This document shows, piece by piece, positions 18,417 through 39,565 of a DNA stretch of 64,000 nt; the stretch's first letter is position 1, and each line of letters opens with the position of its first letter. The stretch lies in the sequence record OR050627.1, one strand, 5' to 3'. The notes below the pieces were generated by a model that did not search any database, had not been told where the DNA came from, and saw nothing but the letters and a program-made list of their open reading frames with translations. The translations under genes were made by a program, and so were the position numbers.

Positions 18417-19700
18417 ATGACAGCAAACGTACAAAACTTAGGAACTATTTTCGCAGATAAATTCAATGAAGTAATGGCTAACGAAGCTAACGTAACAAAA
18501 GCTTACCAGGTCATAGCTAAATTTTGTATAAGCCAAGCTAACCAGGCTGACGAAGATGACTCAGAAACTATAGCTTTCTGGAATGAAAAGGAAACATATT
18601 GCATGGACAAAGCTAAAGCCGGAGTTGCTAAAGTTGCAACTACTATCGAACGTTTCCAAAAGAACACTTCAAATTTCAAAACAGAATTTAAGTTTTCAAG
18701 CAAGGAGGAGCGAACAATTTACCAAAGATTCGTAGAGAACAAAGAAAACACTACTAACAAGTTAATGTACTACACAGTAACTGATGAAAATTTCAATTAC
18801 AGAACACAATCAGGCGTTTACTTCCATAACATGGTTAATGCAATCGTTGAGAGGTTCAATGAAATTTCAAACTACGAATTTGCAATCGTTGACAAGGAGT
18901 TCTTAGTAAACAACGAATTTGCAATTGACACTGAACTTGGTAGAAGATATGCGTATTATGTAGATACTGAGGACTTCCATGCATCTACAAAAGAACAAGT
19001 AGCATCAGTATATTCAAAAGTACATCCTGGATGTAGAGTATTCGTATCTTATGAAGCATTAGCCGAACATATCTCAACTTACATCAGATACAAAGCAATT
19101 TACATTCTTAGCGACCAGGCGTTTAATGCTTTACGTTACTTAGTAGATTCCATCGAAGTTGTTAAATGTCCAAACCTTGACTTAACAGAATTTGAAGAGG
19201 ACGGTTTAATTAGCCATGACTTCCAGGCATACGCAGAATTCTTAAGCTTCAGAAAATTCAACACTCAGCATTATACTAATTCGGAAACTGTGGAGGTAGA
19301 AGTTGAACAAAAACAGGAGTTCTTCTCTGACTTCATCAGATTCAAAACTACTGGAAAATCAGAGAAAAAGTCAGTAACAAAGGACATTACATATGATTTA
19401 ATTACAATTTCCAAACCGGCATCCAAGGTACCAGTATATAGATTTGCTAAAAGAATGAAGCAAAACCCAGGTACTAGACAAATCCTGATTCAGAATATCT
19501 TGCTAACATTGAACGAAAACTTACAATTGGAAAACATTGAAGTTATGCCAGAAGACTTTACGTTAAGCAACAACAAAGATTACGTAATGCATAGCCAACT
19601 TAACTCCATCATTACAATTGCTAACAGAGATGCTGATAGATTCCATGCAGGAACGTTAGAAGTGCTAACAAACATTTTGCAAATACAAATTAGAAAGTAA
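18417..19700 (+). CDS. Hypothetical early protein (427 aa)
   Basis: Long ORF with highly-expressed-type codons; promoter TATATTTG 18326-18333; hairpin terminator near 19760-19790. Confidence 0.75.
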   Translation: MTANVQNLGTIFADKFNEVMANEANVTKAYQVIAKFCISQANQADEDDSETIAFWNEKETYCMDKAKAGVAKVATTIERFQKNTSNFKTEFKFSSKEERTIYQRFVENKENTTNKLMYYTVTDENFNYRTQSGVYFHNMVNAIVERFNEISNYEFAIVDKEFLVNNEFAIDTELGRRYAYYVDTEDFHASTKEQVASVYSKVHPGCRVFVSYEALAEHISTYIRYKAIYILSDQAFNALRYLVDSIEVVKCPNLDLTEFEEDGLISHDFQAYAEFLSFRKFNTQHYTNSETVEVEVEQKQEFFSDFIRFKTTGKSEKKSVTKDITYDLITISKPASKVPVYRFAKRMKQNPGTRQILIQNILLTLNENLQLENIEVMPEDFTLSNNKDYVMHSQLNSIITIANRDADRFHAGTLEVLTNILQIQIRK

Positions 19701-20936: not shown

Positions 20937-21599
20937 ATGGCAAAAATCTTAAAAGAAATTACGACTATCGACTTAGGCATAAAATATGCAGGTAAAGTAT
21001 CAAAGTCAATCACTGACACTTTTGCAGACAGGCTTAACAATGTTACAATTAACGCAATAGTAACTCAGTTTGTGCATTCACCAGAAGGCGCCAAAATTAT
21101 GTTCATGGGTGTTGGTAAAAATTCATACCTTTCGCATAAACTTGCGGCTACTTGTCAGTCACTTAACATTAATGCAAACTACTTTGATTCTGTGCATGCT
21201 ATGCATGGTGACTTAGGCGCTTTACGCCCAGGCGATATCGTTATAGCATTTTCAAAATCAGGCAAAACTGCAGAATTACTGCATACTTTGGCTTATTTAA
21301 AGAAGCACAAAAAACATTTTGGCGTAACTACAGTAGGCGTTTTTGCATCCGATGAAGGCTACAATTCCGAGGCAGTTACTTCAATGGAAATAACTAAAAC
21401 TACAGACTACCAAATTTTGCTTAGATCATGCCAAGAATTGGACGACAACAAAACAGTTCCTACTACATCGGCATTAGTTATGCAAGCAGTCGGCGACGTT
21501 ATAGCATTACAAATTGCTTCAACTAACGGGCTTACTACAGAACAATTCGGGCTTACTCATCCTGGTGGATTAATTGGCGCAATACATAACAAAGACTAA
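20937..21599 (+). CDS. SIS-domain sugar-phosphate isomerase (KdsD/arabinose-5-phosphate isomerase-like, no CBS domains)
   Basis: MGVGKNSYLSHKLAAT, AMHGDLG, FSKSGKTAEL, PTTSA, THPGG. Confidence 0.88.
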   Translation: MAKILKEITTIDLGIKYAGKVSKSITDTFADRLNNVTINAIVTQFVHSPEGAKIMFMGVGKNSYLSHKLAATCQSLNINANYFDSVHAMHGDLGALRPGDIVIAFSKSGKTAELLHTLAYLKKHKKHFGVTTVGVFASDEGYNSEAVTSMEITKTTDYQILLRSCQELDDNKTVPTTSALVMQAVGDVIALQIASTNGLTTEQFGLTHPGGLIGAIHNKD

Positions 21600-22219: not shown

Positions 22220-23962
22220 ATGACAAAAAAGAAATTTGAAAACTTAATTATTGTAGCATCTGGCGCAGGAACTAGAATGGCTGAGTATACGATGAACAAC
22301 ACAATTCCAAAGTTGTTAGTAAGTCTAGGAAACGAAACAATCTGGTCGTCTATGCTTAAAAATATTGACCAAGTAGCTGAGTATGTTTTTGTTGTAGCAA
22401 ATTCTAAGCACATTCCAATGCTTAAAGAGGTTGCAAAACTTACATATCCTGAACAATCAGAGGACATTATCTACGTCGAATACGATGAGCAAGATGGCAC
22501 TGCTAACACAATTTCAAAAGTAGTTTCTGACAGAATGATTGATGGTAATGCTTTGATAGTTTGGTCAGATATTCTTGAAGCTTCTACAGAATCTTTGCTA
22601 CCTCTTACTGGTGCGTTATCTAAGCTTAATGAATATGATGTAGAAAACCTGGAAATGGTAGTTATTACAGACAATCAGCCAAGACATCGATTTAAAATTG
22701 ATGGTCCAGTTATTGAAGAAGTTGCCGATGCTTCTGGTAACATAGTAGGCGCTTATGCTACTAACGAAATTGCAAAATTCGGAAATTGGTCAGGTTCTTA
22801 CGGTAGAGGTTTAAGGGATTTTAAATTTACTGGTGAAGTGTTGAGACATAACCAGGATTTTATTTCGCTAGTCAAAGTTATGCATGAACGTGATGATATT
22901 AGAACTATCAAAACTTTCAAAGCGGATTTTATTGACCTTGGAGATTCTGCAAAATACCAAGCTTACATGGCTTCCAAAGAGATCAAAACTCGTTACTTTA
23001 ATGCTTTGGAAATTGACACAGACAGTGTTACAAAACGTGCAATAAACACTAAAGGCAAAGAAGTCATGGCTAACGAGGCAGACTTCTACAATTTTATGGA
23101 ATATGCAGGCTTTGATTCTATGTTTGCAAAAGTTATTGAAATTATTGGCGATGACGCTAACTATATTGACTGCATAACATTAGAGAAGCTTGACAAAACT
23201 ATACATCAACATATTACTGAGCATTCAGCTACAAGCAAACAAAAAACTGCAAGATCATATGCTGCAAGGATAGCTTACAAAAACTTTAAGCAGTTTATGA
23301 AGCCTTTGCATACTGCAAATCCCGAGGACTTCATACAACAAATGGATTTTTCAGATGATGCGTTGTATAACGCTGCTTGGAAGGAATACATTGAAGTAAC
23401 TAGGTCTAGGTACGAATCAATCAAAGGATTGCTTTCGGCATCTGACGTTATAAGATTTAATGGCGAACCGGCGCCTAACTTTGACTATGTAATGGCTAAG
23501 TTAGAGGACTACTTAAAAAATGCAAATCCTCTTAGACTAGGCCTTATTCATGGTGACACTAATACTGCCAATGTTATGATGGATGCCAAAGGTGCTATGA
23601 AGCTTATTGACCCTCGTGGAGTTTTTGGTGACATGCAATATGCTGGTGATACTAATTATGACCTAGCTAAATTCATTTATGGATTGACAGGCTATACTGA
23701 CTTTAATGATTCTACAGACTTTAAAGTTAAAAAGGACGGTACTTCGTTATACTGTGAATTATTCAACAAATTGCCGTCGCCATGGTATGTTTGCCAGGAT
23801 AACGATGGTAACGATGATATCAATGCAGTTATCTTAGTAGGCTTAATTTGGCTTAAACTACCTGCTTACATTATCAACAATCCGCTAAAATCGTTAGTAG
23901 CTTATTACAAAGGCTTAACATTGCTAAACAAAGCATTGAATGAATACGAATTTGCAAGATAA
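22220..23962 (+). CDS. Fusion: NTP-transferase (sugar-phosphate nucleotidyltransferase) + APH/choline-kinase-like phosphotransferase
   Basis: N-terminal IIVASGAGTRM...IPKLL; C-terminal LIHGDTNTANVM, KLIDPRG, GDTNYDLAKF; own promoter 22162-22186. Confidence 0.85.
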   Translation: MTKKKFENLIIVASGAGTRMAEYTMNNTIPKLLVSLGNETIWSSMLKNIDQVAEYVFVVANSKHIPMLKEVAKLTYPEQSEDIIYVEYDEQDGTANTISKVVSDRMIDGNALIVWSDILEASTESLLPLTGALSKLNEYDVENLEMVVITDNQPRHRFKIDGPVIEEVADASGNIVGAYATNEIAKFGNWSGSYGRGLRDFKFTGEVLRHNQDFISLVKVMHERDDIRTIKTFKADFIDLGDSAKYQAYMASKEIKTRYFNALEIDTDSVTKRAINTKGKEVMANEADFYNFMEYAGFDSMFAKVIEIIGDDANYIDCITLEKLDKTIHQHITEHSATSKQKTARSYAARIAYKNFKQFMKPLHTANPEDFIQQMDFSDDALYNAAWKEYIEVTRSRYESIKGLLSASDVIRFNGEPAPNFDYVMAKLEDYLKNANPLRLGLIHGDTNTANVMMDAKGAMKLIDPRGVFGDMQYAGDTNYDLAKFIYGLTGYTDFNDSTDFKVKKDGTSLYCELFNKLPSPWYVCQDNDGNDDINAVILVGLIWLKLPAYIINNPLKSLVAYYKGLTLLNKALNEYEFAR

Positions 23963-24052: not shown

Positions 24053-26722
24053 ATGGCAAAATTTACAAAACTTGCTGGAGAAGTTGCTAAGCTTTACGAC
24101 GGTAAAGTTACTGGTAACACTATCAAATTTGACAGTGAGGACGACTTATTTAAAGCAGCTGATGAAATTGCTGATCAGTTTGCATTTACGATGGACCAGG
24201 ATAAACTGACCATTGAGTTCCTTAACGAAAACATCGACATTAAATTCCTTAAACAATTTGCATCTGCTATGGGCGTTAGCAAATTTACAAACGAATATGT
24301 CGGTAAACTTACTAAACAAATAGGTATTCAGCTTAATGAGACTGAAGTTGACACAGTTACTACATTACTAAACAAAGTAGAAAGTCCGGAATATCCTGAT
24401 GTTGCTAAAGTTGCAGCTGACCCAATGCAACAAATTGCAGATACAATTACAGCATCTACGTCAACAGGCGCTACATTAGACATTGTTGATGGCGAAAATT
24501 CTGCAAAGCAAATAGTTATTAGAACTGACGGCAAACTTATTGCAGCCACGCCTACTGACATCGTAGCAATCAATGAATCTGCTTACGTGCACTACGGAAT
24601 GCATCAACTTAATGAAAATGAGTACAACGCACTTAAAGCTTTGGCAGATGTTGAAGCTAAACGTAGATTCCTAACAAGCATGGGTATTCAAGACCTTGAC
24701 GCCGAATCAATTGCTAAGAACTTAGAGTTGCTTAAACCTCTACATCCTGACATGGATGCAAACGGACTACTTCCACTAAACGAAGCCAAAGTTGAAATTG
24801 AGGTTGGCGTTACTTACGCTAGCAAAGCTAATGATGCTTTGGAAGATGTTAAACATCTGTACAAAAAACTAAAGCAAAAAGCTTCAAACTCATGGGTTGT
24901 CAAAGACTATGACGTCAATGATATTGTAGAAACTTTAGAAAAAGCCGGAGTTCCTGCTAACGAAATTTACGTTAACGAGTCTACAAAAGACATGGACATA
25001 TACAACTTACAATCTAAAGTCGCGCTATTCTGTAAAAAGTCAGGACTTTCTGGAGCCGATGTACAAAAAGCTTTACTACTTGTTAACTTAGAAGCTAAAG
25101 AAGCTAAGCCTAATTTTAGCAAATACATTAACATCAAGGACAGTATGCTAAACGAATCTGCAGATGCTGAGGACGCTGAGGAAATGTTCGAACGTAAGAA
25201 CAAAGCTTACTCTAAGATGATTGAGCAAGATGGCTTAGCTAAAGAACTTTCAGAATTCCTTGCGTCTTTTGGCGAAAACACTAAAATTCCTAAGGATGGC
25301 TTAGTTGGTGAGTATGGCGAACTTTCTGCAGATTTGCAAGAAGGAATCAACAAATTCATGGAAGAGCGTGGTTATTTTGCTAATGAGTCTGACAGTACTA
25401 ACGAAGAAATTGAAAGTGTATACAAATTTGAGTCGATAAAAGATATTGAAGTTGCTGCAGCGGCTAAAGGATATGTTTGCAAAGGGCATTCAGGACAATC
25501 TGAGTCTTCTGACAAATACAAATTTGACATTCTAGCCAAAGGTGGCAAAAAATGTGCAATGGGTGTTTATGACAAAACTAAAAAGATTGCAATATTGGAT
25601 GTTAATGATGAACATAAAGGAACTTCATTACTTGAGGCTAAAATGATCAATGAGAGCGCAGGCATTGAAAACTTCTTTGCATCTATGGGCGCTACGTTCA
25701 GCAAAGAGTTACGTACAGATGGCACTTACAAATACCAAGTCACTGGCTTAGTAGGTTATGCTAATGAGGCTACTGAAGTGCCTAACACTGCCGATCTAAT
25801 TGCATTTGAGATTCTTAAACTATACGGAAACTTCAAAGAAGCTACAAGGCTTTCACGTTCAGTAGTTAAGCAAGCATTACGTAACGTTATTGACACGTTG
25901 AAAGTTGACGACTCTTGGTTAACTGACGAATCAAAGTTTATTTCGCTTTTTGAAGCTATCGACACTATGAGAGTAGACTTTGGCCTAATTGACGAATCAA
26001 TACCTCAGCAAGAAGCTAAAATTGCCGGAACTAAAGCTAAGATAGCAGAAATTAAATCAGAAGCTAAGGCTGCTTCAGCTAACGCATCTTCTAAAATTTC
26101 TACAGAAAAGGCTAAGCTTGCAAATGCTAAAGCTACTTTGAAAAACCTTAAAAAGTCAAAGTCGTTAAATGAATCTAAAGCACCTCAAGGTGTAGGCGGA
26201 AATGTTTACGTAGTACCAAACTCGTCTTTCCAAAATCCTTGGCTGACTCATAAACTTGAAACGTCACAAGGCATGAGAGGATATCAGTTTGCAAATCAAT
26301 TTAAGTCTAACATAGTTAACGCAGACATTATGGTTGACTATTATTTGCCTAAAGATGACAATGTTGTTAATGAAGTTGGTATGGATACGGAAGGAACTTC
26401 AAAACCGCAAAAATCTGAAATTATAGCTACGCCAGTTTCAATTTACATTAACGAAAACAACGTACTTTGTTTCAATGAAAATCCGATCCCTTCTGAAATT
26501 GCAGAAAACGGTCAAATTGGCTCAGTTGCACAATTCAAGGAATATGCTAAATACATTCTTGGAGGAGGCATTCCTGGTGCAGAATCTGCATGCGAAGAAG
26601 GCCCAGTAACTGAAGAGGATATTGCAAAAATTGACATTATTTGTGATGCATGCGGTGAAAACTATGGCGCTATGATGGGTAAATTTGATGATTATCTTAG
26701 TCAGAAAGCTTCCAATTGCTAA
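24053..26722 (+). CDS. Large acidic putative internal-head polyprotein
   Basis: 889 aa with 8 [ILVA]NE[SAG] motifs; late-like TATAAATC at 24019-24026. Confidence 0.65.
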   Translation: MAKFTKLAGEVAKLYDGKVTGNTIKFDSEDDLFKAADEIADQFAFTMDQDKLTIEFLNENIDIKFLKQFASAMGVSKFTNEYVGKLTKQIGIQLNETEVDTVTTLLNKVESPEYPDVAKVAADPMQQIADTITASTSTGATLDIVDGENSAKQIVIRTDGKLIAATPTDIVAINESAYVHYGMHQLNENEYNALKALADVEAKRRFLTSMGIQDLDAESIAKNLELLKPLHPDMDANGLLPLNEAKVEIEVGVTYASKANDALEDVKHLYKKLKQKASNSWVVKDYDVNDIVETLEKAGVPANEIYVNESTKDMDIYNLQSKVALFCKKSGLSGADVQKALLLVNLEAKEAKPNFSKYINIKDSMLNESADAEDAEEMFERKNKAYSKMIEQDGLAKELSEFLASFGENTKIPKDGLVGEYGELSADLQEGINKFMEERGYFANESDSTNEEIESVYKFESIKDIEVAAAAKGYVCKGHSGQSESSDKYKFDILAKGGKKCAMGVYDKTKKIAILDVNDEHKGTSLLEAKMINESAGIENFFASMGATFSKELRTDGTYKYQVTGLVGYANEATEVPNTADLIAFEILKLYGNFKEATRLSRSVVKQALRNVIDTLKVDDSWLTDESKFISLFEAIDTMRVDFGLIDESIPQQEAKIAGTKAKIAEIKSEAKAASANASSKISTEKAKLANAKATLKNLKKSKSLNESKAPQGVGGNVYVVPNSSFQNPWLTHKLETSQGMRGYQFANQFKSNIVNADIMVDYYLPKDDNVVNEVGMDTEGTSKPQKSEIIATPVSIYINENNVLCFNENPIPSEIAENGQIGSVAQFKEYAKYILGGGIPGAESACEEGPVTEEDIAKIDIICDACGENYGAMMGKFDDYLSQKASNC

Positions 26723-26902: not shown

Positions 26903-28204
26903 ATGTCAAATTACATAAATGAAGCAATGTCACTTAATGGCAAAGTGGCATATAACGAAGGCCAAGTAGCTTTCAAAACTAACACTGCGTTCTCCATCAT
27001 ACAGCATTTAGCTTGGCAATACAACGACACTTACGTTGGTAGTGTTAAGACGATAAAAATGCCTTACGAAATTAAAGCCAAAGCAGTTAAGCAACTTTCA
27101 TTAAATGGAACTCCTTGCATTTTTAGAGAACTTGGTGAACTTGAAACATTCCAGTCTGTAGGTGAATTTGACTTCCTACAAATGGTTTATATGTTCACTG
27201 ACAAGCCTGAATTGCTACAATACATTGACCAGTCATACGTAGAATTTGGAATTTTCTTACAAAATGGCACATGGTGGTTTGTTGAAAAGCAGAACAACGC
27301 TAAGCTTTTTGAAGAAATTGACGAACTTAACGTTGGCTACTACAACCTAGATTTGCCAACAGCTAAGCTGCCAAAAACAATTTCTATGATTGATTCTGTT
27401 AGTCAAGGCAAAACTGCATTACGTACATATGCAAAAGACAATGCACTTACTGATTTTGTTATATCTACGTTTACTACGCCAATGGCAGTACAACTTAATG
27501 CGTATCCATCAATAGCTAAATTTGCATCATTTGCTCCAGATGCTAACGAATTTACTAACCAACTAATTTCTGTAGTTTTAAAAGAAGAAACGGAAGTTCC
27601 TTACTTACTTGACAAAACTTCCGAGCATATGGTATTGTTAATATGTGTAGATGGCGTAAACAAATGGTTCAAAATTTCAGCATCAGACGTTCTTGCTGCA
27701 ATTAGCAAAAATCAACAAAACTTTTTTGTAGATAGCGTTAAGAACTCACTAGAATCTAGCAGATTAAATGCTGGATTAAAATCAGATGACTTGTATGCAG
27801 CAATTAAACGTTTACGTGCGGTAGCATTATTCAACAATTTGCTACAAGATACTGGTTACTCTGGCTATTATTACGTTAAGAACAACTCACATACACTAAA
27901 GGCTGATGCTTTCAACAAATTCAGCATTAATTCTCAAGGTTATGTTAACCAGATTTTTAATGACAAGGACTTAGTGCTTTACAAGGACACTATAATTTCA
28001 TATAGCGTCGATCTTAAAGCAGGCATCGTAGTTATTGGCTATCCTGCGTTAAACCATACTTGCTATATAACGTCAATTGATCAGTTGCCAGAATTGCAAA
28101 ATGAATTCCTGGATGGCAATGCTAAACTGGACACAGTAGTTTCAATTTCCGACATCTACTTTAAGGACAACGGTTCCAAGAAAGGCGATGGCGGTAAAAA
28201 ATAA
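26903..28204 (+). CDS. Late protein of unknown function, with N-terminal YINE/A motif
   Basis: 433 aa; TATACATA at 26876-26883. Confidence 0.65.
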   Translation: MSNYINEAMSLNGKVAYNEGQVAFKTNTAFSIIQHLAWQYNDTYVGSVKTIKMPYEIKAKAVKQLSLNGTPCIFRELGELETFQSVGEFDFLQMVYMFTDKPELLQYIDQSYVEFGIFLQNGTWWFVEKQNNAKLFEEIDELNVGYYNLDLPTAKLPKTISMIDSVSQGKTALRTYAKDNALTDFVISTFTTPMAVQLNAYPSIAKFASFAPDANEFTNQLISVVLKEETEVPYLLDKTSEHMVLLICVDGVNKWFKISASDVLAAISKNQQNFFVDSVKNSLESSRLNAGLKSDDLYAAIKRLRAVALFNNLLQDTGYSGYYYVKNNSHTLKADAFNKFSINSQGYVNQIFNDKDLVLYKDTIISYSVDLKAGIVVIGYPALNHTCYITSIDQLPELQNEFLDGNAKLDTVVSISDIYFKDNGSKKGDGGKK

Positions 28205-28522: not shown

Positions 28523-29368
28523 ATGCTAAATACATTTACAAATATGACGTCCGCCAATAACAATGAATTCTTAAATGAATGTGTTATTGCTGCTAAGAAA
28601 TTCGATGGCCACTTTATTATTGCAAAAAATCGTGACCGTCCGTACGATCCATCATTAACGTTAATCCACGAAATTATTGACGGTATTGAAACTGTGTGGA
28701 TGGTTGATGAAGATACTGACTGGTCAGAAGGTATGAATGAATTTGGCATTAGCATAGTTAATTCGGCGCTTATGGTTGCTAGAGATGAGGCTGAAAAGAA
28801 AACTGCCAAGAAAGAAGGCAAAAAGTTTTTGAAGGACGGCACAATAATTCGTGAAGCGCTAAAGCATTCTGATGTTGAAAAGATCATTGACATTATCATA
28901 AGCAAAGACGGCGGGCTTAAAGGTCATACTTTCGTTTGTACAAAAGATGAACTTTATGCAGTTGAATTGACTTCTAAACATCAGCCAGAAGTTCAAAACA
29001 TTTCTGATTCTGACAATGAAGTTAGGACTAACCACGGAATCAAACATACTTCTGCAGGTTACCAAAAAGGCTTGTCATTCAAGTCATCTGCAATTCGTAA
29101 AAATTCTGCAATTGCTCAGATTAGTAAAGCTAATACGCCTGAGGAAGTTCTGCAAAGAATGCGTAAACGTCTTTATAAAAAGGATTCTATGCTTAATATG
29201 AAACGTGATACTAAAAAGCTTTGGACATCTTCGCAACTTATGATGGACCCGACAAATCTGACCATTAAGCTAGTAGCATTTTCTGACAAAACTCAGGATT
29301 TGAAAATTGACAACAGATTGCCAGAAGGTTATGTGCCTAAAATCAAACTTGAATTGCAAGTTATATAA
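28523..29368 (+). CDS. Ntn-hydrolase (peptidase C45 / choloylglycine hydrolase-like)
   Basis: C20-VIAAKKFDGHFIIAKNRD and EGMNEFGISIVNSAL are typical Cys-Ntn motifs; later VRTNH. The Cys is preceded by FLNE. Confidence 0.75.
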   Translation: MLNTFTNMTSANNNEFLNECVIAAKKFDGHFIIAKNRDRPYDPSLTLIHEIIDGIETVWMVDEDTDWSEGMNEFGISIVNSALMVARDEAEKKTAKKEGKKFLKDGTIIREALKHSDVEKIIDIIISKDGGLKGHTFVCTKDELYAVELTSKHQPEVQNISDSDNEVRTNHGIKHTSAGYQKGLSFKSSAIRKNSAIAQISKANTPEEVLQRMRKRLYKKDSMLNMKRDTKKLWTSSQLMMDPTNLTIKLVAFSDKTQDLKIDNRLPEGYVPKIKLELQVI

Positions 29369-29448: not shown

Positions 29449-30489
29449 ATGAACTTTAACAAAAATGAGGCCTACGGAATTGGAGGCGAAAAATTAACTT
29501 ATAAGGGCCAGACTTCTACAGCCAATAAAGTATACCATGCATTCGTTAACGAATCAGGAAGTAATGTTTTCTTAACTGCTGAGCAGATTAACGAAGCCAC
29601 AAACGGTTCTGCCGACGAAGAAGTTTACAATCAATGGGCCGAACTTTTACTTCAGCATATTGGCGTTACAAGAGCTAAAAAGTATCTTAATGCTAACGAC
29701 ATCAACAAAGAACTTAAAGCTATGCTTGATGCTAATCATGACATGGAGTCTGACATTCTTTACGATAAAGCAATGAACGCTAAGCTTATTGCTGCAGTAA
29801 GCAGACGTAGAAAGGCTGCAGGCTATGTTAATGAAAACGAATCTAGCGGCTTCATTAATTTCATTAACGAGCATTTTGAGCGTAGACGTTTTGGTTCGCC
29901 AAACTTTGAAGTTACTGACAGATTAGATAGTCAGCTTGATGGCGATGAAGTTATGGCAATTGCAGAAAAATATTGGAAAGGAGTTTCAAAATCTATCAGC
30001 TATCAGAACAACGTAGCATATGATGCTCAGAAAAAATTGGCAAAATATTTTAACGATAACAGGGCATCTATTGACAAAGCAGATTTTGATGTTTTTGCAT
30101 CTGAATATATTGCTGCATCTAAACGTAAATTAGATAATAAGCCTGCGTATACGCCGCCACCTGCAAACAGAATGGAGACTTATGCAGATTTCATTACTAA
30201 AAACTTCCCAGTTTTCAAAGGATTTAGGTTTCCGGAAGTCAAGGGCGACAAGCAATTCGAAGACACTCTTTATGTAAAAGTTAAGCCTGCAGATTATGGC
30301 GCATTAGCACCGCTATTTAAAGATATTACTGCATACATTTACATTCAAATAAATTCAAATGGTTCTGGTGATGTATCTTATGGACTTAAAGGTACTACAG
30401 TTCAAACTGGCAAAGAAAAACAGATTTACAAAGCTGGTTGGAATACTAAAGATGGAGGCAAAACCTTCAAAACTTTAGGTTGGGACTAA
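29449..30489 (+). CDS. Putative multi-domain internal head protein
   Basis: FVNE/S, QINE/A, YVNENE/S and FINE/H motifs; the C-terminal domain is paralogous to the next ORF. Confidence 0.6.
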   Translation: MNFNKNEAYGIGGEKLTYKGQTSTANKVYHAFVNESGSNVFLTAEQINEATNGSADEEVYNQWAELLLQHIGVTRAKKYLNANDINKELKAMLDANHDMESDILYDKAMNAKLIAAVSRRRKAAGYVNENESSGFINFINEHFERRRFGSPNFEVTDRLDSQLDGDEVMAIAEKYWKGVSKSISYQNNVAYDAQKKLAKYFNDNRASIDKADFDVFASEYIAASKRKLDNKPAYTPPPANRMETYADFITKNFPVFKGFRFPEVKGDKQFEDTLYVKVKPADYGALAPLFKDITAYIYIQINSNGSGDVSYGLKGTTVQTGKEKQIYKAGWNTKDGGKTFKTLGWD

Positions 30490-31409: not shown

Positions 31410-32333
31410 ATGGCAAACAAGGCTGTAGGGATGTTATGGAAGACCGCACTACCGGCTGTAGCGGACTTACTCCCAAATTCAATTTATTTTATTAAACCGG
31501 CTACTGGTGTAAAACCAGGAGTATTCGTTACGAACAATGATGCTTCACAGGTTATGCAAATTAACCCTGATACTATTGTCGGGGACTTTGTTGCCAAAAT
31601 TAACGGCATAGCGCCAACAGACGGTAATGTTAATTTGGACATTGCGTTTAACGCTACTACTGGAGTGCTTACATTTACTGGAGGAGCTAACCAAGTTAAC
31701 CTTGACGCTAGGTACGTTAAGAAGGCAGATTTTGCACCTTGGCAGTCTACTACAGATAATAGACTTACTGCATTAGAAGCGTTAGCTGCTACAGGACTAA
31801 AAACTCCAGTTGCATTCGATGCATCAGCCAATGCAACGTTCCCTACACAAGCACAAGGTTTTACGTACAAAGTTACTGTAGCAGGTACAACTTCAGGAGT
31901 ACTACTTGAAGTAGGAGATACAATTATTTACGACAAGCCAGGAAATACTAACACACCTTATGTCGTTCAGGCAAACATTGATGCCGCAACTACAACAGTA
32001 AAAGGTATCATCAGAATAGCTACACAAACTGAAGTTAACAACAAAGTAGTAGGTTCGTTAGTAGGCGATGCTTCCGTAACGCCACTTACGCTTTACTACA
32101 AACTAAATGCTTGGCTAGCAGATATTACTGCATCTCAGACTGACGTAAACGCCGGAACTCGTAATGATGTTTTCGTTACTCCTGCTACTTTAAAAGTTAG
32201 GCTAGACACTATCGTAGCTAGTTTACATACCCACACCAACAAAACTCAGCTAGATAAAATAGGAGAGGATGCTGGCGGTAATATGACTTATGGTGGCAAG
32301 CCAGTTTACACTCTGCAAATTTCCGAGTGGTAG
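31410..32333 (+). CDS. Tail fibre protein (proximal/connector type)
   Basis: RIATQTEV...VTPLTL and ASQTDVNAG...VTPATL fibre repeats; ends with the HTHTNKTQLDKI motif. Confidence 0.7.
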   Translation: MANKAVGMLWKTALPAVADLLPNSIYFIKPATGVKPGVFVTNNDASQVMQINPDTIVGDFVAKINGIAPTDGNVNLDIAFNATTGVLTFTGGANQVNLDARYVKKADFAPWQSTTDNRLTALEALAATGLKTPVAFDASANATFPTQAQGFTYKVTVAGTTSGVLLEVGDTIIYDKPGNTNTPYVVQANIDAATTTVKGIIRIATQTEVNNKVVGSLVGDASVTPLTLYYKLNAWLADITASQTDVNAGTRNDVFVTPATLKVRLDTIVASLHTHTNKTQLDKIGEDAGGNMTYGGKPVYTLQISEW

Positions 32334-32443: not shown

Positions 32444-35400
32444 ATGCTATACAAATACACAACACTCCCGGCAGATACTTCAGCGTTACCAGTAGGCGCT
32501 TTGATTCTTACAAAGAGTGGTGACGGTTACATTCTTGACAATAATAAAGTTGCGGTGCCTTTCAAAGGTAATGTACTTACTACTACGCTAATAAACAATT
32601 GGAATGACGCTTACACTAAAGCGCATGTGCATGCTAACAAAGATACGTTGGACCTTATTAGCTTACTTTCAATTCAAAAATGGGATGAGGCTTACTCACT
32701 AAAGCACTCGCATACTAACCTGGCAACGTTAGAAACTATAACTCCTTCTAAAATTGCTGAGTGGAACAGTGCAATGAAGTTTATAAAAACATTGTCTACT
32801 GAGGACTTAGATACTGTAATTACTAACGGAATCTATACTCAGCCATCTAATGCCAACGCGACAACAGCAAATCACTATCCAATTGGTTACGCCGGAACGT
32901 TAACAGTGCTAGGCAATGGTACTAACCACATTGTTCAGGAATATGTTAGGCTTGCGTCAGGTGCTACTGGCAACGTAAAATATCGCAGATACTACTATGT
33001 TTCATCAGGATGGTCTAACTGGCAAAAATCGTTAGATGATCGTGATATTACTCAGGCAATGATTGATTCTTGGAATCTTGCAGTGTCTTGGGGTAACCAC
33101 GCATCGGCTGGATATTTAACTAGCACTACTGGTGACGCTAGGTATCTAAAACTTACTGGAGGCACATTAACTGGTGATGTTGCAGTAACTGGAGGTAAAA
33201 CATTTACATTCACTGCTACCGATGGCAAAACTTATGAAGTTAACGGTTCAGGCACTAAGCATACTTCTGGAGCTAACGTTTTCAGCACTAACTTTATTAA
33301 CGCTACAACGTATGGGCTGACTCATGGTACTCAGCAAATGCTAACCAAGGACATTACTAACAACATACTAAAAATTGGTAATGACACTGCACCTGCACAA
33401 TTAAGATTAAAATCTGCAGTAGGTCCAAATCCTACATCAACAGTACTTACTGATAGCAATGGTGACGTTTCTATAGTTCCTGCTTTACCGCTATTTACGA
33501 ACTATCTTGAACCGCAACTAATTGCTAATGCTGATAGCGCAACAACAAAAGGCATAGAGCTTAACTACTTAGACTCTACTTCACTAAACAAACCTACTAC
33601 ATTAGCTAACGGAACGTTAATGTCGTTGAACATAAACAGTTCAGGAGGCTCGCAATTAGCAATATCAACATCAACTGATCCTGCAGTTTATTTCAGAACT
33701 AGATCAAACACTACATTCGGTGGATGGACTAGGTTAGCTACAACTAACGATCTTACTGCAATTGGCAATGACTATATTAGCAAAACTACTAACGACTTAC
33801 CTGCTAATTCGGCTTGGTATGTTAAGAAAGGAACTTCTGGAATTGGTGTAGTAGATACTAACTTTATTGGATTGTTTGATGCTTCTACAAAAGCTTACGT
33901 TACTGGCGGAGTGCTAAAAATTGTTAATGGGGGTGTAGAAACTAATGCATTATCTACATTTAACGGAACGACTACGTTCAACAACAACACTACTTATGTT
34001 AACGCTAGTACGTTATTTATGTTAGGCGTGCATAACGCTACGCTAGGTATGCAAGGCAACGGCAGACTTTCCGTAACGTCTGGAAGTGCTAACAAAACCG
34101 GTAGTATAATTGTTGAAGGAGATTCACCAATTATTGCAAGACCTGAAACTATAGTTAATTCTGATACTGTACTTGCAAACTTACCTGTAGGTACTCATGG
34201 TGCAGGTACTAGCATAGGAGGCGTTAATGCATCATTCATAACTTTTGGTAGCCCAGTTACTGGAACTAAAACAAACTTGCTTGGCTCTACTACAGGCTTC
34301 TTGAAATTCAGATCATCGTCAGGTGCTACTTTTAACGATTGGAAGTCTTTAGTTTCTTTTGAAGACTTACAATTAGCTACTACAGAAACTTCAGTTAGCT
34401 TAACGTTCAATGGCGTAACAAAGACTGCGCCAATAACTACCGGAACGTTAACTGGCGTAATGTACACAAACAACTGGACATTACCATTTGGTACAACTAA
34501 AGGTTATATTGATATTGAAATGCCGACGTCTACTACCGGTGACATAGTACTTACGTTAGTAGGCTACTGGGGTAACGAACGACAATCAGGTTCTGTTAAG
34601 TATCAAATTGGATTTGGCGCAAATACTACTCAGATTTACGATCAGTATGCAAATATAGTTTCGGTTACAGGAGGTCAAGTTTTGTTAGATAGCTATGCAG
34701 TTAATTTATCTGCGGCTATAGTGCTAGTTAATGCTAAGCCTTGTTTACGTATTTGGTGTATGCGTGATGGCATTTCACAAACTAACACAGTTAGGGCTTT
34801 CTTACAAATAAAAACTAGACAAGGTACTCCGTTTACATCATTGGCTGATGTTAAGCCGTTAGCTTTCGTAGCAGAGCCTAACATACCAACATTTATGGAC
34901 CTTGACCAGGCGCCTAAGTCAGTTTCATTTAATCAGATTGCAGTAAGATCATCTGCGCAAAATGATGACAACGCCGCAATTAAGCTTAAAACTGCTAGAA
35001 TTTCAACATCGCCAACAAATACAAATGGTATTCGTGTAGTAGGTACATCAAATACTGCAGCAGGTTATCTTTATTTAGGTTCAGGTAACAATAGACTAGG
35101 AGTTGATGACGGCTCAGCAAATTCGCCTTTGCTTTATAACTCATCACCAGTAGTTACAAGAGACTATGCTATAGCAAATGGTTTTATATTTTCAGAAGGC
35201 AATGCCAGAGGTACTATAAATGGAGTTTCTGCTGAAGTAGGACTTCCTGCTAACTCATTTAAACCAGTAAAATCAGGATTCTACAGAGCTAATGGCGAAA
35301 ACAACTGGGGCGCATTATCGCTAAACATTGCACACCCATCGCAATCTAATGGAGGATTTATGGCAGGTATTGCTTTTGATTATTCGGGAGCTAATGCATA

Positions 35401-38400
35401 CTTAACGGGTAATGATTCGGCAGGTAACAAACTTCCTAACAAGAAAATTTTAACATCTGCAGATATCGACATATCTAAGTATTGGGAGAAATGGACCGAT
35501 GGCACTAATGTAGGATTTAATAATGTTACACCTTACTACTTCCTAGGCGCAGATGCTAACACTGCACAGAAAGTTTATACTGGCGGATTACTTGCATCAA
35601 ACAGCTTCAGTGATGGTACTAAAATTCCTACTTTTGGATTATATTCAAAGGGTGACATTGCATTTGACGGCAATTTAAACAGGTTATCAGGCGAATTAAA
35701 CATTCAACGTACAGGCATTAATAAGCTTAGAACTAACGGGCCATCTACAATTTTATCTGCCGAAGCGACTAACACTACATCAGGTGCTTTTATTAGACCT
35801 TTAGGTGATAACAATACTGCAGGGCAAACTATATTTGCTAAAGACATCGTACGTTACAACACAAAAGCTAGACAATTTAGTAGTGTATCTAACGTAACTA
35901 AATATGAAAACTTGGCAGCAGTATCGTTGGCACATAACGGCCCTAGTACAATAAAAGTTATGTTCCCTCATAGTTTGAATACTATAATGTGGAACATTAA
36001 GCTTACTGTAGTTTCATATACTGGCGCAAACAATACTAACGTTAACCAGCTGCCAATGGAACTAACAATTTCAGGTTATGGCTCGGCGCCTACAACACCG
36101 TCGACTAATACTGGTGCTTCTGTAGTGAACGCGTTTCCTGCGTTCACTGGAGTTAAAATTGGTTTAGATGATGCTACTGGCTTTAAAACGTTAATGCTTA
36201 ATTTTAGTGCGCCTTTAGCATATCCAAAAGTCATAATCGACCAAGTAATTTATCATCACTCTGGGCTAACGCCGACAATTACTGACTTAGATAATGACTA
36301 TGTTATTACACAAACTGCTGACGAAACTGGATTTACTGCACAAACTGATATTCCGTTAACGCAATTTAAAGGTTATTTTGACATTGCTAAGGCTAGCACA
36401 GCATTTCCTACTAACATAGCTAATGCTAACCAAGCATCAGCAATAAACCAGGATATGAACACATTGCCTAGCGGTAACTACGTTGGCGGTGTAAGTGTAT
36501 CTGCACAAAATTTGCCGATTCCTGTAGGCACTGGCAATCCAGGAGGCTTAATATCTTTTGGTAGCGGTTCACAGACGACTAGAATTCTAGGCGCTAGTGA
36601 TGGTTCTGATAATCTTTGGTTTAATTCAGGTACTTCTACAAAATGGTATCAGCTAGCTTCAAGAGATTACGTAACTACGCAATTAGCAAACTACATACCA
36701 ACGTCACAGAAAGGCGTAGCTAATGGGGTTGCTACGTTAGATGCTAATGGTACTGTACCTTCTACGCAACTGCCTTCTTACGTTGATGATGTTTTAGAAT
36801 TTGCATCGTTATCGGCATTCCCAGCAGTAGGTGAATCTGGTAAAATTTATATTGCTATTGATACTAATTTACAGTATAGATGGTCTGGTTCAGTTTACGT
36901 ACCTATTATGAGTTCCGGAGGTGTAATATCCGTAAATGGTAAAACTGGCATAGTTACTTTAGATAAAACTGACATTGGTTTAGGAAATGTAGACAATACT
37001 GCAGATAACGTAAAGAACGTACTTAGCGCCACTAAGTGGACTACGCCAAGAACATTTACGTTAAATGGTGACATTTCTGCTATAGGTACAGTTGATGGCT
37101 CGGCTAACGTAACGTTCGCAACTACTTTGCCAAACATTGTAACTGCAGGAACTTATAAAATTACTACAGTCAATGCTAAAGGCCAAGTTACTGGAGGTTC
37201 AAATCCTACAACTTTAGCAGGCTTTGGCATTACTGATGCTATGTCAACATCGCATCCAGCTAATGTGATTACTTCAACTGACATTGCTAACTGGAATGCT
37301 CAAGTAGCAGTAGGCAATTTTAGAACTTATGGTTTAGGAACATACAATGCACAAACTATATCTGATTTTAATACGTTACAGACGCAACTTGAAAATGTAA
37401 CTAGATTCTATGGTTCAGTTAATGCTGCAGTTACTAATGGGCCTGCCGGAATTGATTATCCTGGAGGTGTTTTTAATAGTATAAGTAATGCAGTACAATC
37501 TGCATTAGTTTTTGGAGGTCATGGCAATAACAATGGTTTAGCATACAGAAACAAAACTGGTACTAATGCATGGGGTAACTGGATATACGCTTGGACAGAC
37601 AAGCATTTTAGCCAAACTAACATAAACAATTGGAATGCCGCGTTTGGTTGGGGTAACCACTCAACTCAAGGCTACTTAAAGGCTGCAGATTTAACAGGAT
37701 TAGTTAAGAAATCTGGCGATACTATGTCAGGTATGCTTACGATAAACTCAACATCGCAACCATTAGCACTTAAAGGCGCATCTGCAAATACTAACTACAC
37801 TACTTACATTAAACATGATGGCAGCGGTAATATTGGATTTATTGGTTCAAATGGCGGTGGTGCTATTGGTGATGGCGGAACTGGTGACCGATTTGTAATT
37901 CGCGGAACTGCAGGTCTTGATCTTTATAATGATGCTGGTGCAATTACTGCTAATGGTGGCGCAATTTGGAGCACTATGCATTTTTCAAGCACTGATTTAG
38001 AAAGTTTCTTTGAAGCTTATAATAACAGCATTTCAGGCGGAACTATGACACCTACACAGCTACAGCTTACAAGAACAGGGTCCACTCCAATTAACATTGC
38101 TATACCGACGTTCAACCAAAATACTACAGGCAATGCAGGTTCTGCAACTAAATTGCAAACTGCAAGGACTATAAAAATTGGTGAGCAATCAGGAGCTTTT
38201 GATGGTACTGGAAACTTAACTTTCGGTCACAACGAAATGAAAGTTACTATGTGCGGTGTTAAGACATATGGCGAATCTTGGAACTCAGTAGTAGTGCTAG
38301 ATACTAGAAATGCCAGCCCATTACCATCGACAGATTTACAATCAGCAGTTACATTTGACTTTAAGCAGTCATCTGCAATTGGACTAAATAGCATTCCTGG

Positions 38401-39565
38401 AGTTTCTACATATGCAAGTGCTATTACTATGGCGCCATTCGTTAACGACTCCGGTAATAATAATTCTGCATTTACACTAGCTCAATCTAATGGTGTTTTA
38501 GCATTTAAAAATTATGTTAATGGCGCATGGGGTTCATGGATTAAATTGTTAACATCTGCAGATATTTCTACAGCGTCAATTAACAACTGGAACCAGGCAT
38601 ATTCTTGGGGTAACCATGCAAATGCAGGCTATATGTCCAAGTCTACGCAGATGGGAATATTAAGTTTTAACAGTTTATCTGGAACTGGTGCTAACGGAAT
38701 TTATCGTTCTGATGCTGACCCAACTACAGCAAATGGCGTTAAGAACAAGTATTCGCCAATGTTGCATATGGGCGCTTCTGATACAATGACGCAATTGTCC
38801 ATAGCTTACCAAACTGGTGAACTTTCATTCAGAGGAGGCTACAATAATAGCTGGCAAGATTGGCGTACTGCTTGGGATAACGTTAATTTACCTCAGCCAG
38901 TAACAAGAAACACTGCACAAACTATTACGGCAGATAAAACTCACACAGAGAACATTTTGCTTAATGGTAACAACATGATTAAGTTTTTTGGTACTGCGTC
39001 AACAAGAGTAATGATACTATCTGCTGATAGAATTACTGGTTGGACTGGTATCTCTGATGACCAAGATCGTAAAGTTGCAGGTATTGACTATGGTTCAGGT
39101 AACTATACGTTAGGTGAAATGATCTATGTTAGGAAGACTAACAATGGCACTGGTAATGTAGGTATTAGATCAACTCCGCATGCAACATATCCAGTTTACT
39201 TAAATGGTGACACTGCATGTACTGGTAACTTCATTGGTGTAGGATTCTATGAGTCTTCACGTAGGGCACTGAAAACTAACATTAAAGCTTTTGAGAAATC
39301 AGGACTTGACTTAGTTAATGAACTTGACATTGTAACGTTTGACCGTAAGGACAACGAGGAAATTAAAGATAAAATCGGAGTTATCATAGATGACACACCA
39401 TCCGAATTTGCTTCAATTTCAGGTGATGAGGTTGACTTATACAAAACAACCTTCATTCAAGCCAAGGCTATTCAGGAACTTTCTGCAACTGTTGAGAAGC
39501 AATCTGCCGAAATTGAAGAGCTAAAGAAAATGGTAAATATATTACTAAAAGGTACGAATGGATAA
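32444..39565 (+). CDS. Long tail fibre / receptor-binding protein with C-terminal intramolecular chaperone (peptidase S74)
   Basis: 2,373 aa, G/T/N/S-rich; several knob-like modules; three WGNH repeats; C-terminal SSRRALKTNI...KAIQEL plus coiled coil. Confidence 0.9.
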   Translation: MLYKYTTLPADTSALPVGALILTKSGDGYILDNNKVAVPFKGNVLTTTLINNWNDAYTKAHVHANKDTLDLISLLSIQKWDEAYSLKHSHTNLATLETITPSKIAEWNSAMKFIKTLSTEDLDTVITNGIYTQPSNANATTANHYPIGYAGTLTVLGNGTNHIVQEYVRLASGATGNVKYRRYYYVSSGWSNWQKSLDDRDITQAMIDSWNLAVSWGNHASAGYLTSTTGDARYLKLTGGTLTGDVAVTGGKTFTFTATDGKTYEVNGSGTKHTSGANVFSTNFINATTYGLTHGTQQMLTKDITNNILKIGNDTAPAQLRLKSAVGPNPTSTVLTDSNGDVSIVPALPLFTNYLEPQLIANADSATTKGIELNYLDSTSLNKPTTLANGTLMSLNINSSGGSQLAISTSTDPAVYFRTRSNTTFGGWTRLATTNDLTAIGNDYISKTTNDLPANSAWYVKKGTSGIGVVDTNFIGLFDASTKAYVTGGVLKIVNGGVETNALSTFNGTTTFNNNTTYVNASTLFMLGVHNATLGMQGNGRLSVTSGSANKTGSIIVEGDSPIIARPETIVNSDTVLANLPVGTHGAGTSIGGVNASFITFGSPVTGTKTNLLGSTTGFLKFRSSSGATFNDWKSLVSFEDLQLATTETSVSLTFNGVTKTAPITTGTLTGVMYTNNWTLPFGTTKGYIDIEMPTSTTGDIVLTLVGYWGNERQSGSVKYQIGFGANTTQIYDQYANIVSVTGGQVLLDSYAVNLSAAIVLVNAKPCLRIWCMRDGISQTNTVRAFLQIKTRQGTPFTSLADVKPLAFVAEPNIPTFMDLDQAPKSVSFNQIAVRSSAQNDDNAAIKLKTARISTSPTNTNGIRVVGTSNTAAGYLYLGSGNNRLGVDDGSANSPLLYNSSPVVTRDYAIANGFIFSEGNARGTINGVSAEVGLPANSFKPVKSGFYRANGENNWGALSLNIAHPSQSNGGFMAGIAFDYSGANAYLTGNDSAGNKLPNKKILTSADIDISKYWEKWTDGTNVGFNNVTPYYFLGADANTAQKVYTGGLLASNSFSDGTKIPTFGLYSKGDIAFDGNLNRLSGELNIQRTGINKLRTNGPSTILSAEATNTTSGAFIRPLGDNNTAGQTIFAKDIVRYNTKARQFSSVSNVTKYENLAAVSLAHNGPSTIKVMFPHSLNTIMWNIKLTVVSYTGANNTNVNQLPMELTISGYGSAPTTPSTNTGASVVNAFPAFTGVKIGLDDATGFKTLMLNFSAPLAYPKVIIDQVIYHHSGLTPTITDLDNDYVITQTADETGFTAQTDIPLTQFKGYFDIAKASTAFPTNIANANQASAINQDMNTLPSGNYVGGVSVSAQNLPIPVGTGNPGGLISFGSGSQTTRILGASDGSDNLWFNSGTSTKWYQLASRDYVTTQLANYIPTSQKGVANGVATLDANGTVPSTQLPSYVDDVLEFASLSAFPAVGESGKIYIAIDTNLQYRWSGSVYVPIMSSGGVISVNGKTGIVTLDKTDIGLGNVDNTADNVKNVLSATKWTTPRTFTLNGDISAIGTVDGSANVTFATTLPNIVTAGTYKITTVNAKGQVTGGSNPTTLAGFGITDAMSTSHPANVITSTDIANWNAQVAVGNFRTYGLGTYNAQTISDFNTLQTQLENVTRFYGSVNAAVTNGPAGIDYPGGVFNSISNAVQSALVFGGHGNNNGLAYRNKTGTNAWGNWIYAWTDKHFSQTNINNWNAAFGWGNHSTQGYLKAADLTGLVKKSGDTMSGMLTINSTSQPLALKGASANTNYTTYIKHDGSGNIGFIGSNGGGAIGDGGTGDRFVIRGTAGLDLYNDAGAITANGGAIWSTMHFSSTDLESFFEAYNNSISGGTMTPTQLQLTRTGSTPINIAIPTFNQNTTGNAGSATKLQTARTIKIGEQSGAFDGTGNLTFGHNEMKVTMCGVKTYGESWNSVVVLDTRNASPLPSTDLQSAVTFDFKQSSAIGLNSIPGVSTYASAITMAPFVNDSGNNNSAFTLAQSNGVLAFKNYVNGAWGSWIKLLTSADISTASINNWNQAYSWGNHANAGYMSKSTQMGILSFNSLSGTGANGIYRSDADPTTANGVKNKYSPMLHMGASDTMTQLSIAYQTGELSFRGGYNNSWQDWRTAWDNVNLPQPVTRNTAQTITADKTHTENILLNGNNMIKFFGTASTRVMILSADRITGWTGISDDQDRKVAGIDYGSGNYTLGEMIYVRKTNNGTGNVGIRSTPHATYPVYLNGDTACTGNFIGVGFYESSRRALKTNIKAFEKSGLDLVNELDIVTFDRKDNEEIKDKIGVIIDDTPSEFASISGDEVDLYKTTFIQAKAIQELSATVEKQSAEIEELKKMVNILLKGTNG

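Follow-up and report, generated by a model that had tools for sequence, protein, structure and literature searches.

N-terminal nucleophile (Ntn) hydrolases are textbook self-activating enzymes; isopenicillin-N acyltransferase (AAT, or IAT, of peptidase family C45), for example, cuts itself behind a small residue and retains the N-terminal piece as a subunit. The DNA analysed here, a stretch of 64,000 nucleotides called the window (positions 124001-188000 of record OR050627.1), comes from Chryseobacterium phage MA9V-1, a jumbo myovirus with a 213.5-kb genome, and contains a gene, MA9V1_182, whose product is predicted to be a Cys-type Ntn hydrolase. Its nucleophile, Cys20, directly follows a leader ending in F-L-N-E, a sequence that resembles the cleavage sites predicted for the phage's own prohead protease, and we put the chance that this protease activates the enzyme by cutting after Glu19 at slightly better than even.

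In phage T4, the prohead protease gp21 cuts after Glu in the motif L/I-x-E, with P3 and P1 (the residue directly before the cut) as determinants and with Asp at P1 blocking cleavage (PMC9026906; PMC5694885). It removes propeptides of 7 (Alt) to 65 (gp23) residues, Alt being an injected enzyme, and gp21 itself carries a conforming site, 'LIE-9', close to its N-terminus, while its C-terminus is processed as well (PMC9026906; PMC5694885). Propeptide-bearing packaged enzymes, such as subunits of the virion RNA polymerase, are also known from phages phiKZ, 201phi2-1 and SPN3US (PMC9026906; PMC5694885). We found no Ntn hydrolase reported in the literature among the processed proteins of these three phages, and a literature search returned no paper in which Ntn hydrolases are connected with prohead proteases or in which one is described as a processed protein of the virion. 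Ntn zymogens and the T4-type removal of propeptides from packaged enzymes such as Alt are both known, and what would be new is their combination, in which a maturation cut creates a catalytic N-terminus.

As with T4 Alt and the internal proteins IPI-IPIII, MA9V1_182 is encoded by a phage with a predicted T4-type head module and S77-family protease, it has a short leader ending in L/I-x-E, and a single N-terminal cut would leave a folded protein; to be a packaged, injected enzyme is a feature of Alt. The T4 cut only removes a tag, whereas the cut in MA9V1_182 would create the catalytic N-terminal Cys; the proteins share no sequence homology, and MA9V1_182 is packaged only by prediction. The best structural matches of MA9V1_182 are AAT/IAT and CV2077 (E 5e-8, TM-scores 0.58-0.60), and in the AAT/CV2077-type match the Cys is exposed by cleavage of a precursor. 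In contrast to these enzymes, with which it shares 13-15% identity, MA9V1_182 has a leader of 19 residues, modelled as disordered, that ends in Glu, and its family is viral. Bile-salt hydrolases (BSH) and penicillin V acylases (PVA) of family C59, as well as NAAA and acid ceramidase of family C89, also have the Cys-Ntn fold, and as in BSH/PVA some members of the MA9V1_182 family would expose the Cys by removal of Met (genes that start 'MC') and others have a short leader. However, the TM-scores to C59 and C89 proteins reach only 0.44-0.56 (0.44-0.52 for C59), with no Pfam match, and the substrates are probably different, with many invariant charged residues in the phage family. phiKZ, 201phi2-1 and SPN3US resemble MA9V-1 in being jumbo phages with a gp21-related protease that cuts after Glu in a short motif and with extensively fragmented head proteins, as is predicted for MA9V-1, but their motif is S/A/G-x-E or A-x-E and their propeptides are long, where MA9V-1 appears to use a hydrophobic residue followed by N-E.

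Fold and leader of MA9V1_182

MA9V1_182 is an open reading frame (ORF) for 281 residues at 28523-29368 on the + strand, named 'hypothetical protein' in GenBank, and the translation quoted in the first-pass annotation, MLNTFTNMTSANNNEFLNE-C20-VIAAKK...AKNRD...EGMNEFG, matches it exactly. The codon of Cys20 lies at 28580-28582, and the residues before it read ...N-N-E-F-L-N-E. GenBank places the start at the second ATG (28544, Met8), as it does for the orthologue in the sister phage MA9V-2, which is ~89% identical to MA9V-1 across this region of the genome. The longer form that starts at 28523 is plausible, because the first ATG lies 1 nt past the stop codon of the upstream ORF and because the nearest homologues have leaders of 16-19 residues; with either start, Cys20 is preceded by ...EFLNE.

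To model the fold we used AlphaFold2 (AF2) with a 71-sequence alignment, which gave a predicted local distance difference test (pLDDT) value of 90.3 and a predicted TM-score of 0.88. The first core strand of this model begins at residue 21, directly after Cys20. When the model was compared with the PDB by Foldseek, the top matches were isopenicillin-N acyltransferase, both as precursor and as mature enzyme, CV2077, bile-salt hydrolases, NAAA and penicillin V acylase, with a best match of E=5e-8, probability 1.0 and TM-scores up to 0.60. All 22 of the 22 best fold matches were Cys-Ntn hydrolases or the Ntn-fold protein MTH1020, and proteasome beta subunits came next. In the 71 sequences, C20, R37, D38, R39, N72, N170, H171 and R228 are invariant, as are ~30 residues in all besides Cys20; the Cys nucleophile is found in 71/71 of them and throughout a second alignment, of the class-B members described below. 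The R/D/N/R constellation is typical of Cys-Ntn active sites. Given the fold matches, the confident model and an invariant Cys20 that opens strand 1, we regard the assignment as a Cys-type Ntn hydrolase as sound, and the first-pass annotation, which had named such an enzyme from the sequence, is confirmed as to fold.

Strict membership in family C45 is borderline by sequence. The Pfam model AAT/peptidase C45 (PF03417) scored 22.2 bits over residues 33-251, against a cutoff of 23.2, while the homologue P0148 scored 25.0 bits, over the cutoff, and several close homologues have precomputed PF03417 matches. The NCBIfam model NF040521, 'C45 family autoproteolytic acyltransferase/hydrolase', matched homologues at 41.6 and 31.9 bits (cutoff, 85) and did not match MA9V1_182 itself. 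In a Pfam scan of MA9V1_182 at E<=0.1, AAT was the only match, with none to choloylglycine hydrolase/penicillin V acylase (C59). Sequence searches of the PDB with the single sequence and with a profile returned nothing usable, so that only the fold search worked, and searches of PHROGs and NCBIfam with MA9V1_182 were likewise without usable matches. The structural neighbours hydrolyse linear amides, and the substrate of MA9V1_182 is probably a linear non-peptide or pseudo-peptide amide; the anti-defence or cell-wall role that had been suggested for it is speculation.

The predicted mature domain thus comprises Cys20-Ile281 plus the stop codon (28580-29368, +), as judged from the AF2 model, Foldseek, Pfam and conservation, with Cys20 as the putative N-terminal nucleophile. 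The leader or propeptide, residues 1-19 (28523-28579, +), ends in ...E-F-L-N-E and is predicted to be removed, on the grounds of disorder, substitutions and the rank of its site. Residues 1-19 are disordered in the AF2 model (pLDDT 51-58). Between MA9V-1 and MA9V-2, 4/5 substitutions in the Ntn protein fall within the 19-residue leader (Fisher p=7e-5), and F-[L/I]-N-E is kept, so the leader appears to be flexible and fast-evolving with its motif retained. Scans for sigma-70 promoters and for terminators around MA9V1_182 gave nothing interpretable (the host of the phage belongs to the Bacteroidota), and the terminator scan found none on the + strand between 24053 and 30489.

Predicted cleavage-site signature of the MA9V-1 head module

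From its profile matches, MA9V-1 encodes a T4-type head module that consists of a portal, an S77-type protease and a gp23-like major capsid protein (MCP). The T4-type, gp20-like portal lies at 423-2135 (+; Pfam Portal_T4, E=1e-54) and the MCP at 6755-8476 (+; Pfam Gp23, E=1.4e-12). Between them is MA9V1_151 (2501-6544, +), a predicted prohead protease polyprotein of 1347 residues in which an S77/gp21-like domain (~residues 1-179) is followed by a long extension. MA9V1_151 scored 25.9 bits for Pfam Peptidase_S77 (cutoff, 27), and phmmer links it (E ~1e-15) to 199-residue proteases that score 94.5 bits for S77. It shares with these related proteases His/Ser columns that never vary, and its junction ...INE↓S at residue 179 (the arrow marks the predicted cut) is invariant as well. 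In 79 related S77 proteases from IMG/VR, the catalytic domain ends in [M/V/L]-N-E↓S (Glu in 79/79, Asn in 68/79, Ser in 74/79), and the N-terminus reads L-L-I-E↓T in 75/79. These motifs are consistent with conserved self-cleavage at both ends of the proteases (L167-L246 and A3). The extension of MA9V1_151 is ~1170 residues long, with DUF5856 at 473-572, and its relatives are stand-alone proteins of ~200 residues; 24 predicted sites would cut the extension into fragments of 9-137 residues, and the whole looks like a protease-scaffold/core polyprotein.

We counted sites of the form [LIVMFYA]-N-E ('hydrophobic-N-E') and compared the counts with expectation and with 2000 shuffles. MA9V1_151 contains 24 such sites where 3.07 are expected (0/2000 shuffles), and the 889-residue protein MA9V1_179, encoded two genes upstream of the Ntn gene, contains 15 where 2.04 are expected (0/2000 shuffles). 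A 2373-residue tail-region protein has 1 site against 1.62 expected and is not enriched. Across the genome (252 MA9V-1 ORFs, locus by locus), five proteins were enriched in sites. Outside the two polyproteins, half of all occurrences of [FYM][LIVA]NE fall in the first 30 residues of a protein, a 7.4-fold excess (binomial p=3.5e-7), and six control tetrapeptides showed no N-terminal bias in MA9V-1 proteins. The MCP has two predicted propeptide sites, EFINE↓A (residue 24) and GFLNE↓S (residue 62), both upstream of the match to the Gp23 fold, which starts at residue 109.

We also trained a position-weight profile only on the 39 sites of the two polyproteins and scored with it the 3,580 Glu residues of all other proteins. 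E19 of MA9V1_182 ranks 2nd of the 3,580, above the MCP sites at residue 62 (3rd) and residue 24 (8th), and the GMNE in the conserved core of MA9V1_182, at residue 73, ranks 629th. One of the polyprotein sites has Cys at P1', as does MA9V1_182. The reading of FLNE as a capsid-maturation cleavage site of MA9V-1, which the first-pass annotation had inferred, is therefore well supported statistically, with a predicted T4-type S77 protease in the same phage and with the motif enriched in the head polyproteins, in the MCP propeptide and at N-termini.

Residues before the cysteine and the route to an active enzyme

A word-indexed search with MA9V1_182 gave 129 matches, an exhaustive search gave 472 clusters at 50% identity (E<=1e-3), and IMG/VR holds >513 viral contigs with the Ntn family. 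Among 185,579 species-representative prokaryotic genomes there was 1 match, on a 7-kb phage-like contig with a leader ending ...L-L-N-E↓C, and among 50,697 deposited phage genomes the family was found in MA9V-1 and MA9V-2 only, which are the only cultured phages that carry it. The family is almost exclusively viral and is uncharacterised, which leaves virtually no bacterial copies for the contrast with phage ones that the first-pass annotation had suggested. Its members fall into two classes by the residues before the Cys, with [L/I/V]-x-E↓C in class A, to which MA9V1_182 belongs, and [K/R]-x-[A/G/S]↓C in class B, where the domain is often part of a giant multi-enzyme fusion.

Of 117 close homologues, 105 have Glu at P1, 10 have the initiator Met there and 2 have Ala. 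In the 107 that bear a leader, P1 is Glu in 105/107 and P3 is I/L/V in 104/107, while P2 is variable, with Asn in 52. The first-pass annotation had let its proposal stand or fall with the conservation of N-E before the Cys; the Glu is conserved, and the Asn is present in about half. Because Asn at P2 is preferred throughout the related S77 protease clade, a match at P2 between the site signature of a phage and its Ntn leader is not specific enough to a lineage. Within 73 IMG/VR loci, 55/55 leaders end in [L/I]-x-E, and the other 18/73 genes start 'MC'. Asp at P1 was never seen in class-A leaders, whose lengths range from 4 to ~200 residues, with none of 2-3 residues. Stop codons directly upstream show that the very short leaders and the 'MC' starts are genuine. 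Elsewhere in class-A multidomain proteins, the P3-P1 tripeptide was not enriched. On a neighbour-joining tree of 256 Ntn domains, the class A/B character needs two changes, with class B basal and class A derived. The 'MC' forms have at least 8 origins within class A, and some of these forms stand beside nearly identical leader-bearing sisters; one 'MC' form (L005) is syntenic with a 'MANLIQE↓C' form (L008).

The position of the gene ties it to head genes in some phages. In L078, a 266-kb contig and the only one common to the IMG/VR contigs with an Ntn gene and those with an S77 protease among the matches listed, T4-type TerL is followed in turn by portal (E=2.7e-67), S77 protease (94.5 bits), three small ORFs, the Ntn gene (MAKLLNE↓C), a DUF3008 protein, a scaffold-like protein and a gp23-like MCP (E=2.5e-75). 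The Ntn gene of L078 is thus inside the head operon, between the S77 protease and the scaffold and MCP genes, and two of the three small ORFs before it have 11-residue leaders ending ...L-I-M-E↓G. In five further loci TerL and the head module follow ~1 kb downstream of the Ntn gene. Both MA9V-1 and MA9V-2 have the gene among site-bearing proteins (889, 433 and 346 residues in MA9V-1), and in L097, a 144-kb MA9V-like contig, it is beside a 620-residue protein with 12 sites (1.6 expected), in the company of a homologue of the 433-residue protein and of small proteins with 12-residue leaders ending ...F-A-N-E↓S. For class-B loci in IMG/VR, no T4-like head genes were found within 10 kb of the Ntn gene, a span that took in no head module at all.

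We propose that MA9V1_182 would be made as an inactive precursor of a C45/AAT-like Cys-Ntn amidohydrolase, and that its 19-residue leader would play the part that short N-terminal propeptides play in T4 Alt and in the internal proteins, bringing the protein into the prohead or at least lying exposed there. The end of the leader, F-L-N-E plus a small residue, would be the target of the S77/gp21-type prohead protease of MA9V-1, and the cut after Glu19 would give Cys20 the free alpha-amino group that Ntn catalysis requires. Active enzyme would then first appear in the maturing head, from where it would reach the next cell together with the DNA; that the protein is packaged, cut by the protease and injected is what we infer. 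We favour activation by the prohead protease because the motif before the Cys equals the specificity of the same phages' protease at P3 and P1, with Asp never seen, and because in the MA9V lineage the match also covers the extended signature. We also count in its favour that the cut would always fall exactly at the Cys, that the leader appears flexible and fast-evolving, and that the gene lies in the head operon in L078.

Several observations weigh against this proposal. Forms that start 'MC' and have no leader make up 10/117 close homologues and 18/73 IMG/VR loci (~10-25%), and since these forms are genuine and have at least 8 independent origins, gating is dispensable. Many leaders consist of just Met plus 3-4 residues, which is below any known T4 targeting leader, and the basal class B has a different motif before the Cys, [K/R]-x-[A/G/S]. 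Most other phages have non-structural neighbourhoods around the Ntn gene, with sugar-nucleotide enzymes and methyltransferases (L002, L005, L008), and the neighbours of the homologues in the non-structural regions of L002, L005, L008 and L010 showed no site enrichment. AF2 leaves the leader of a class-B member unplaced, as it does that of MA9V1_182, and so does not discriminate between modes of activation. For MA9V virion proteins, the literature offers a gel from sodium dodecyl sulfate-polyacrylamide gel electrophoresis for MA9V-1 and nothing for MA9V-2, with no virion or prohead proteomics. To our knowledge, every characterised leader-bearing relative (AAT, PVA, NAAA) processes itself, and an acidic P1 could serve self-cleavage, as in glycosylasparaginase. 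The maturation-gated zymogen of the first-pass annotation is therefore upheld as far as the motif and the conserved Glu are concerned, but not as an obligatory feature of the family, given the 'MC' forms and the class-B motif.

The chief alternative is that an N-to-S acyl shift lets the precursor break the Glu19-Cys20 bond by itself, as in AAT, PVA, NAAA and acid ceramidase, and that the enzyme acts in the cytoplasm of the infected cell; the aliphatic P3 and the Glu at P1 would then serve the intramolecular reaction or mirror the substrate pocket, and the resemblance to head sites would be coincidental or secondary. Self-processing is the rule of the superfamily, the fold neighbours of MA9V1_182 include precursors of self-processing enzymes, and the NCBIfam model named for autoproteolytic C45 enzymes matches homologues below threshold. 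The small P1 of class B (A/G/S) is also typical of self-processing Ntn enzymes, self-cleavage would be the simplest route to a free Cys in the giant fusions in which class B often lies, the frequent and apparently neutral switching between leader and 'MC' forms mirrors the PVA/BSH family, and four-residue leaders, shorter than any known targeting sequence, and the non-structural neighbourhoods in many phages fit this explanation as well. Yet it needs the motif to coincide at P3 as well as at P1 with the specificity of the same phages' maturation protease, with no case of Asp, and in the MA9V lineage the coincidence would have to extend to an aromatic P4 and Asn at P2, with a rank of 2/3,580. 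AF2 leaves the leader unplaced rather than docked in the cleft, the gene is inside the head operon in L078, and between classes the whole motif was exchanged around an unchanged catalytic core; such an essentially single switch of leader class is hard to explain by Ntn chemistry alone. We therefore judge self-processing to be rather unlikely, though a serious contender.

A leader that is mainly a capsid-targeting tag would also be removed by the prohead protease, but activation would be a by-product, early activity would be harmless, and talk of zymogen gating would be overstated. T4 leaders of 10 residues suffice to target proteins to heads and carry foreign enzymes into them (PMC9026906), ~12 MA9V-1 proteins share an N-terminal tag, and the 'MC' forms show that constitutive activity is tolerated. 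Leaders of 4-5 residues (Met plus the motif) are too short for such a role, yet the motif exactly abuts the nucleophile. The cut would in all cases fall right at the Cys and in none a little before it, a pattern indicative of selection acting on the new N-terminus as such, and we consider a mere tag improbable. That MA9V1_182 is unprocessed or not an enzyme, starting at Met8 or Met1 and retaining its leader for a non-catalytic role, has no direct support beyond the annotation of Met8 in GenBank. We consider it very improbable indeed, as the Cys and ~30 further residues, including the R/D/N/R constellation, are invariant over highly diverged sequences, and the recurrent 'MC' forms would expose the Cys by removal of Met.

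If activation by the prohead protease is true, the Ntn superfamily would gain a new regulatory logic, trans-activation by an unrelated protease whose cut falls precisely at the nucleophile, and the T4-type propeptide system would gain a new use, with a cut that creates an active site and does more than remove a tag. A bolder form of this proposal is that the capsid protease is the obligatory trans-activator that creates the Ntn N-terminus, so that the enzyme is active only inside capsids and enters the next host pre-armed, and that self-processing in the basal [K/R]-x-[A/G/S]↓Cys forms gave way to protease-dependent activation of [L/I/V]-x-E↓Cys forms in T4-like phages, some of which repeatedly went back to constitutive 'MC' forms. 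This we hold to be possible but somewhat short of an even chance.

Predicted processed head proteins, neighbouring genes and multi-enzyme fusions

The analysis also yields a predicted cleavage motif and substrate list for head maturation in a new lineage of jumbo phages that infect Bacteroidota. Between the portal and protease genes, a small protein (2193-2453, +) has the site CFINE↓A at residue 14 and a C-terminal ...FVNE (2 sites, 0.2 expected); it is a candidate prohead-core protein that may correspond in position to T4 gp67/gp68. MA9V1_179 (24053-26722, +) has no family match, and its 15 sites would give fragments of <=135 residues. Its orthologue in MA9V-2 (L099:1011-4145) has 1044 residues, 155 more, and 20 sites against 2.4 expected, and in MA9V1_179 we probably see a second scaffold-like or internal head protein, one that would be broken down as the head matures. 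MA9V1_180 (26903-28204, +; 433 residues) has a 7-residue leader, MSNYINE↓A, and is a candidate packaged protein; in its homologue in L097 the site is kept at the equivalent position, and the gene lies close to the Ntn gene in both phages. MA9V1_183 (29449-30489, +; 346 residues) has sites at residues 35, 49, 129 and 141 (4 against 0.68 expected, 9/2000 shuffles), and its 234-residue counterpart in MA9V-2 is also site-enriched.

The N-terminal tag shared by ~12 MA9V-1 proteins is short and ends in aromatic-hydrophobic-N-E, followed by Ala or Ser. In the window, tagged proteins are encoded at 2193-2453, 17436-17663(-), 18417-19700, 26903-28204 and 52213-52512, and outside it at positions 65572, 95824, 106131 and 122538 of the OR050627.1 record. 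None of the tagged proteins had a match in a Pfam scan, and we predict from the tag that they are a set of packaged and processed head proteins. Downstream of the Ntn region are a tail-fibre/collar-like protein of 307 residues (31410-32333; PHROG 910/972) and then the 2373-residue protein (32444-39565), a region that marks the border between head-associated and tail genes in MA9V-1. MA9V-1 also has genes for envelope sugars, lipid A and KDO (LpxD-like, KpsF/GutQ, GlmU and KDO-8-P-phosphatase) at 15385-16299, 20937-21599 and 22220-23962 of the window and at record positions 72188-73558, and in Ntn-gene-bearing relatives many nucleotide-sugar enzymes adjoin the gene.

The genes that flank the Ntn gene in 13-16 aquatic T4-like loci encode a cytidylyltransferase-like plus DUF5661 protein, a small Asp/Arg-hydroxylase-like protein and a 226-residue protein (for example L054:6902-9445, L054:9445-9957 and L054:10862-11542). 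In an uncultured Mediterranean phage (P0196), the Ntn domain is fused into a 944-residue protein annotated 'cytidylyltransferase like', and DUF5661 directly precedes the Ntn domain in P0148. Some large phages have giant single ORFs, such as P0249 (2792 residues), P0148 (1879 residues), L102:10016-16378 (2120 residues) and one in L096, that contain RNA ligase, PolyA_pol-type nucleotidyltransferase, HAD, LigT/2H phosphoesterase and Ntn domains together with topoisomerase IB or superoxide dismutase (SOD). Class-B fusions include RNA ligase + nucleotidyltransferase + HAD + LigT + Ntn + topoisomerase IB and LigT + SOD + DUF5661 + Ntn, and other phages have separate adjoining genes for these enzymes. 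By their domain content, the giant Ntn fusions look like a multi-enzyme polyprotein of the RNA-repair type, and the fusion and neighbour partners (cytidylyltransferase-like/DUF5661, LigT, nucleotidyltransferase, RNA ligase, SOD and ChaC) may hint at an auxiliary or counter-defence toolkit. We considered whether the giant fusions could be gene-call artefacts with an internal Met before the Cys and rejected this, as such a Met is not general and the ORFs are long and uninterrupted. A lipoprotein lipobox as the meaning of [A/G/S]↓C in class B was also rejected, as there is no hydrophobic signal segment before the site.

The class-B loci share a further short motif, typically (A/P)-S-x-x-R-V-A-x-R-(F/Y/W), which occurs 31 times in ~75,000 residues of class-B loci (L100-L110, L132 and L139 of IMG/VR) and 8 times in ~262,000 residues of class-A loci. 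It sits at the N-termini, C-termini and internal junctions of many proteins and is found 13-14 residues before the Ntn Cys in about one third of class-B leaders, where AF2 models it as a short helix. This motif is possibly a targeting or module-boundary signal of high-GC large phages.

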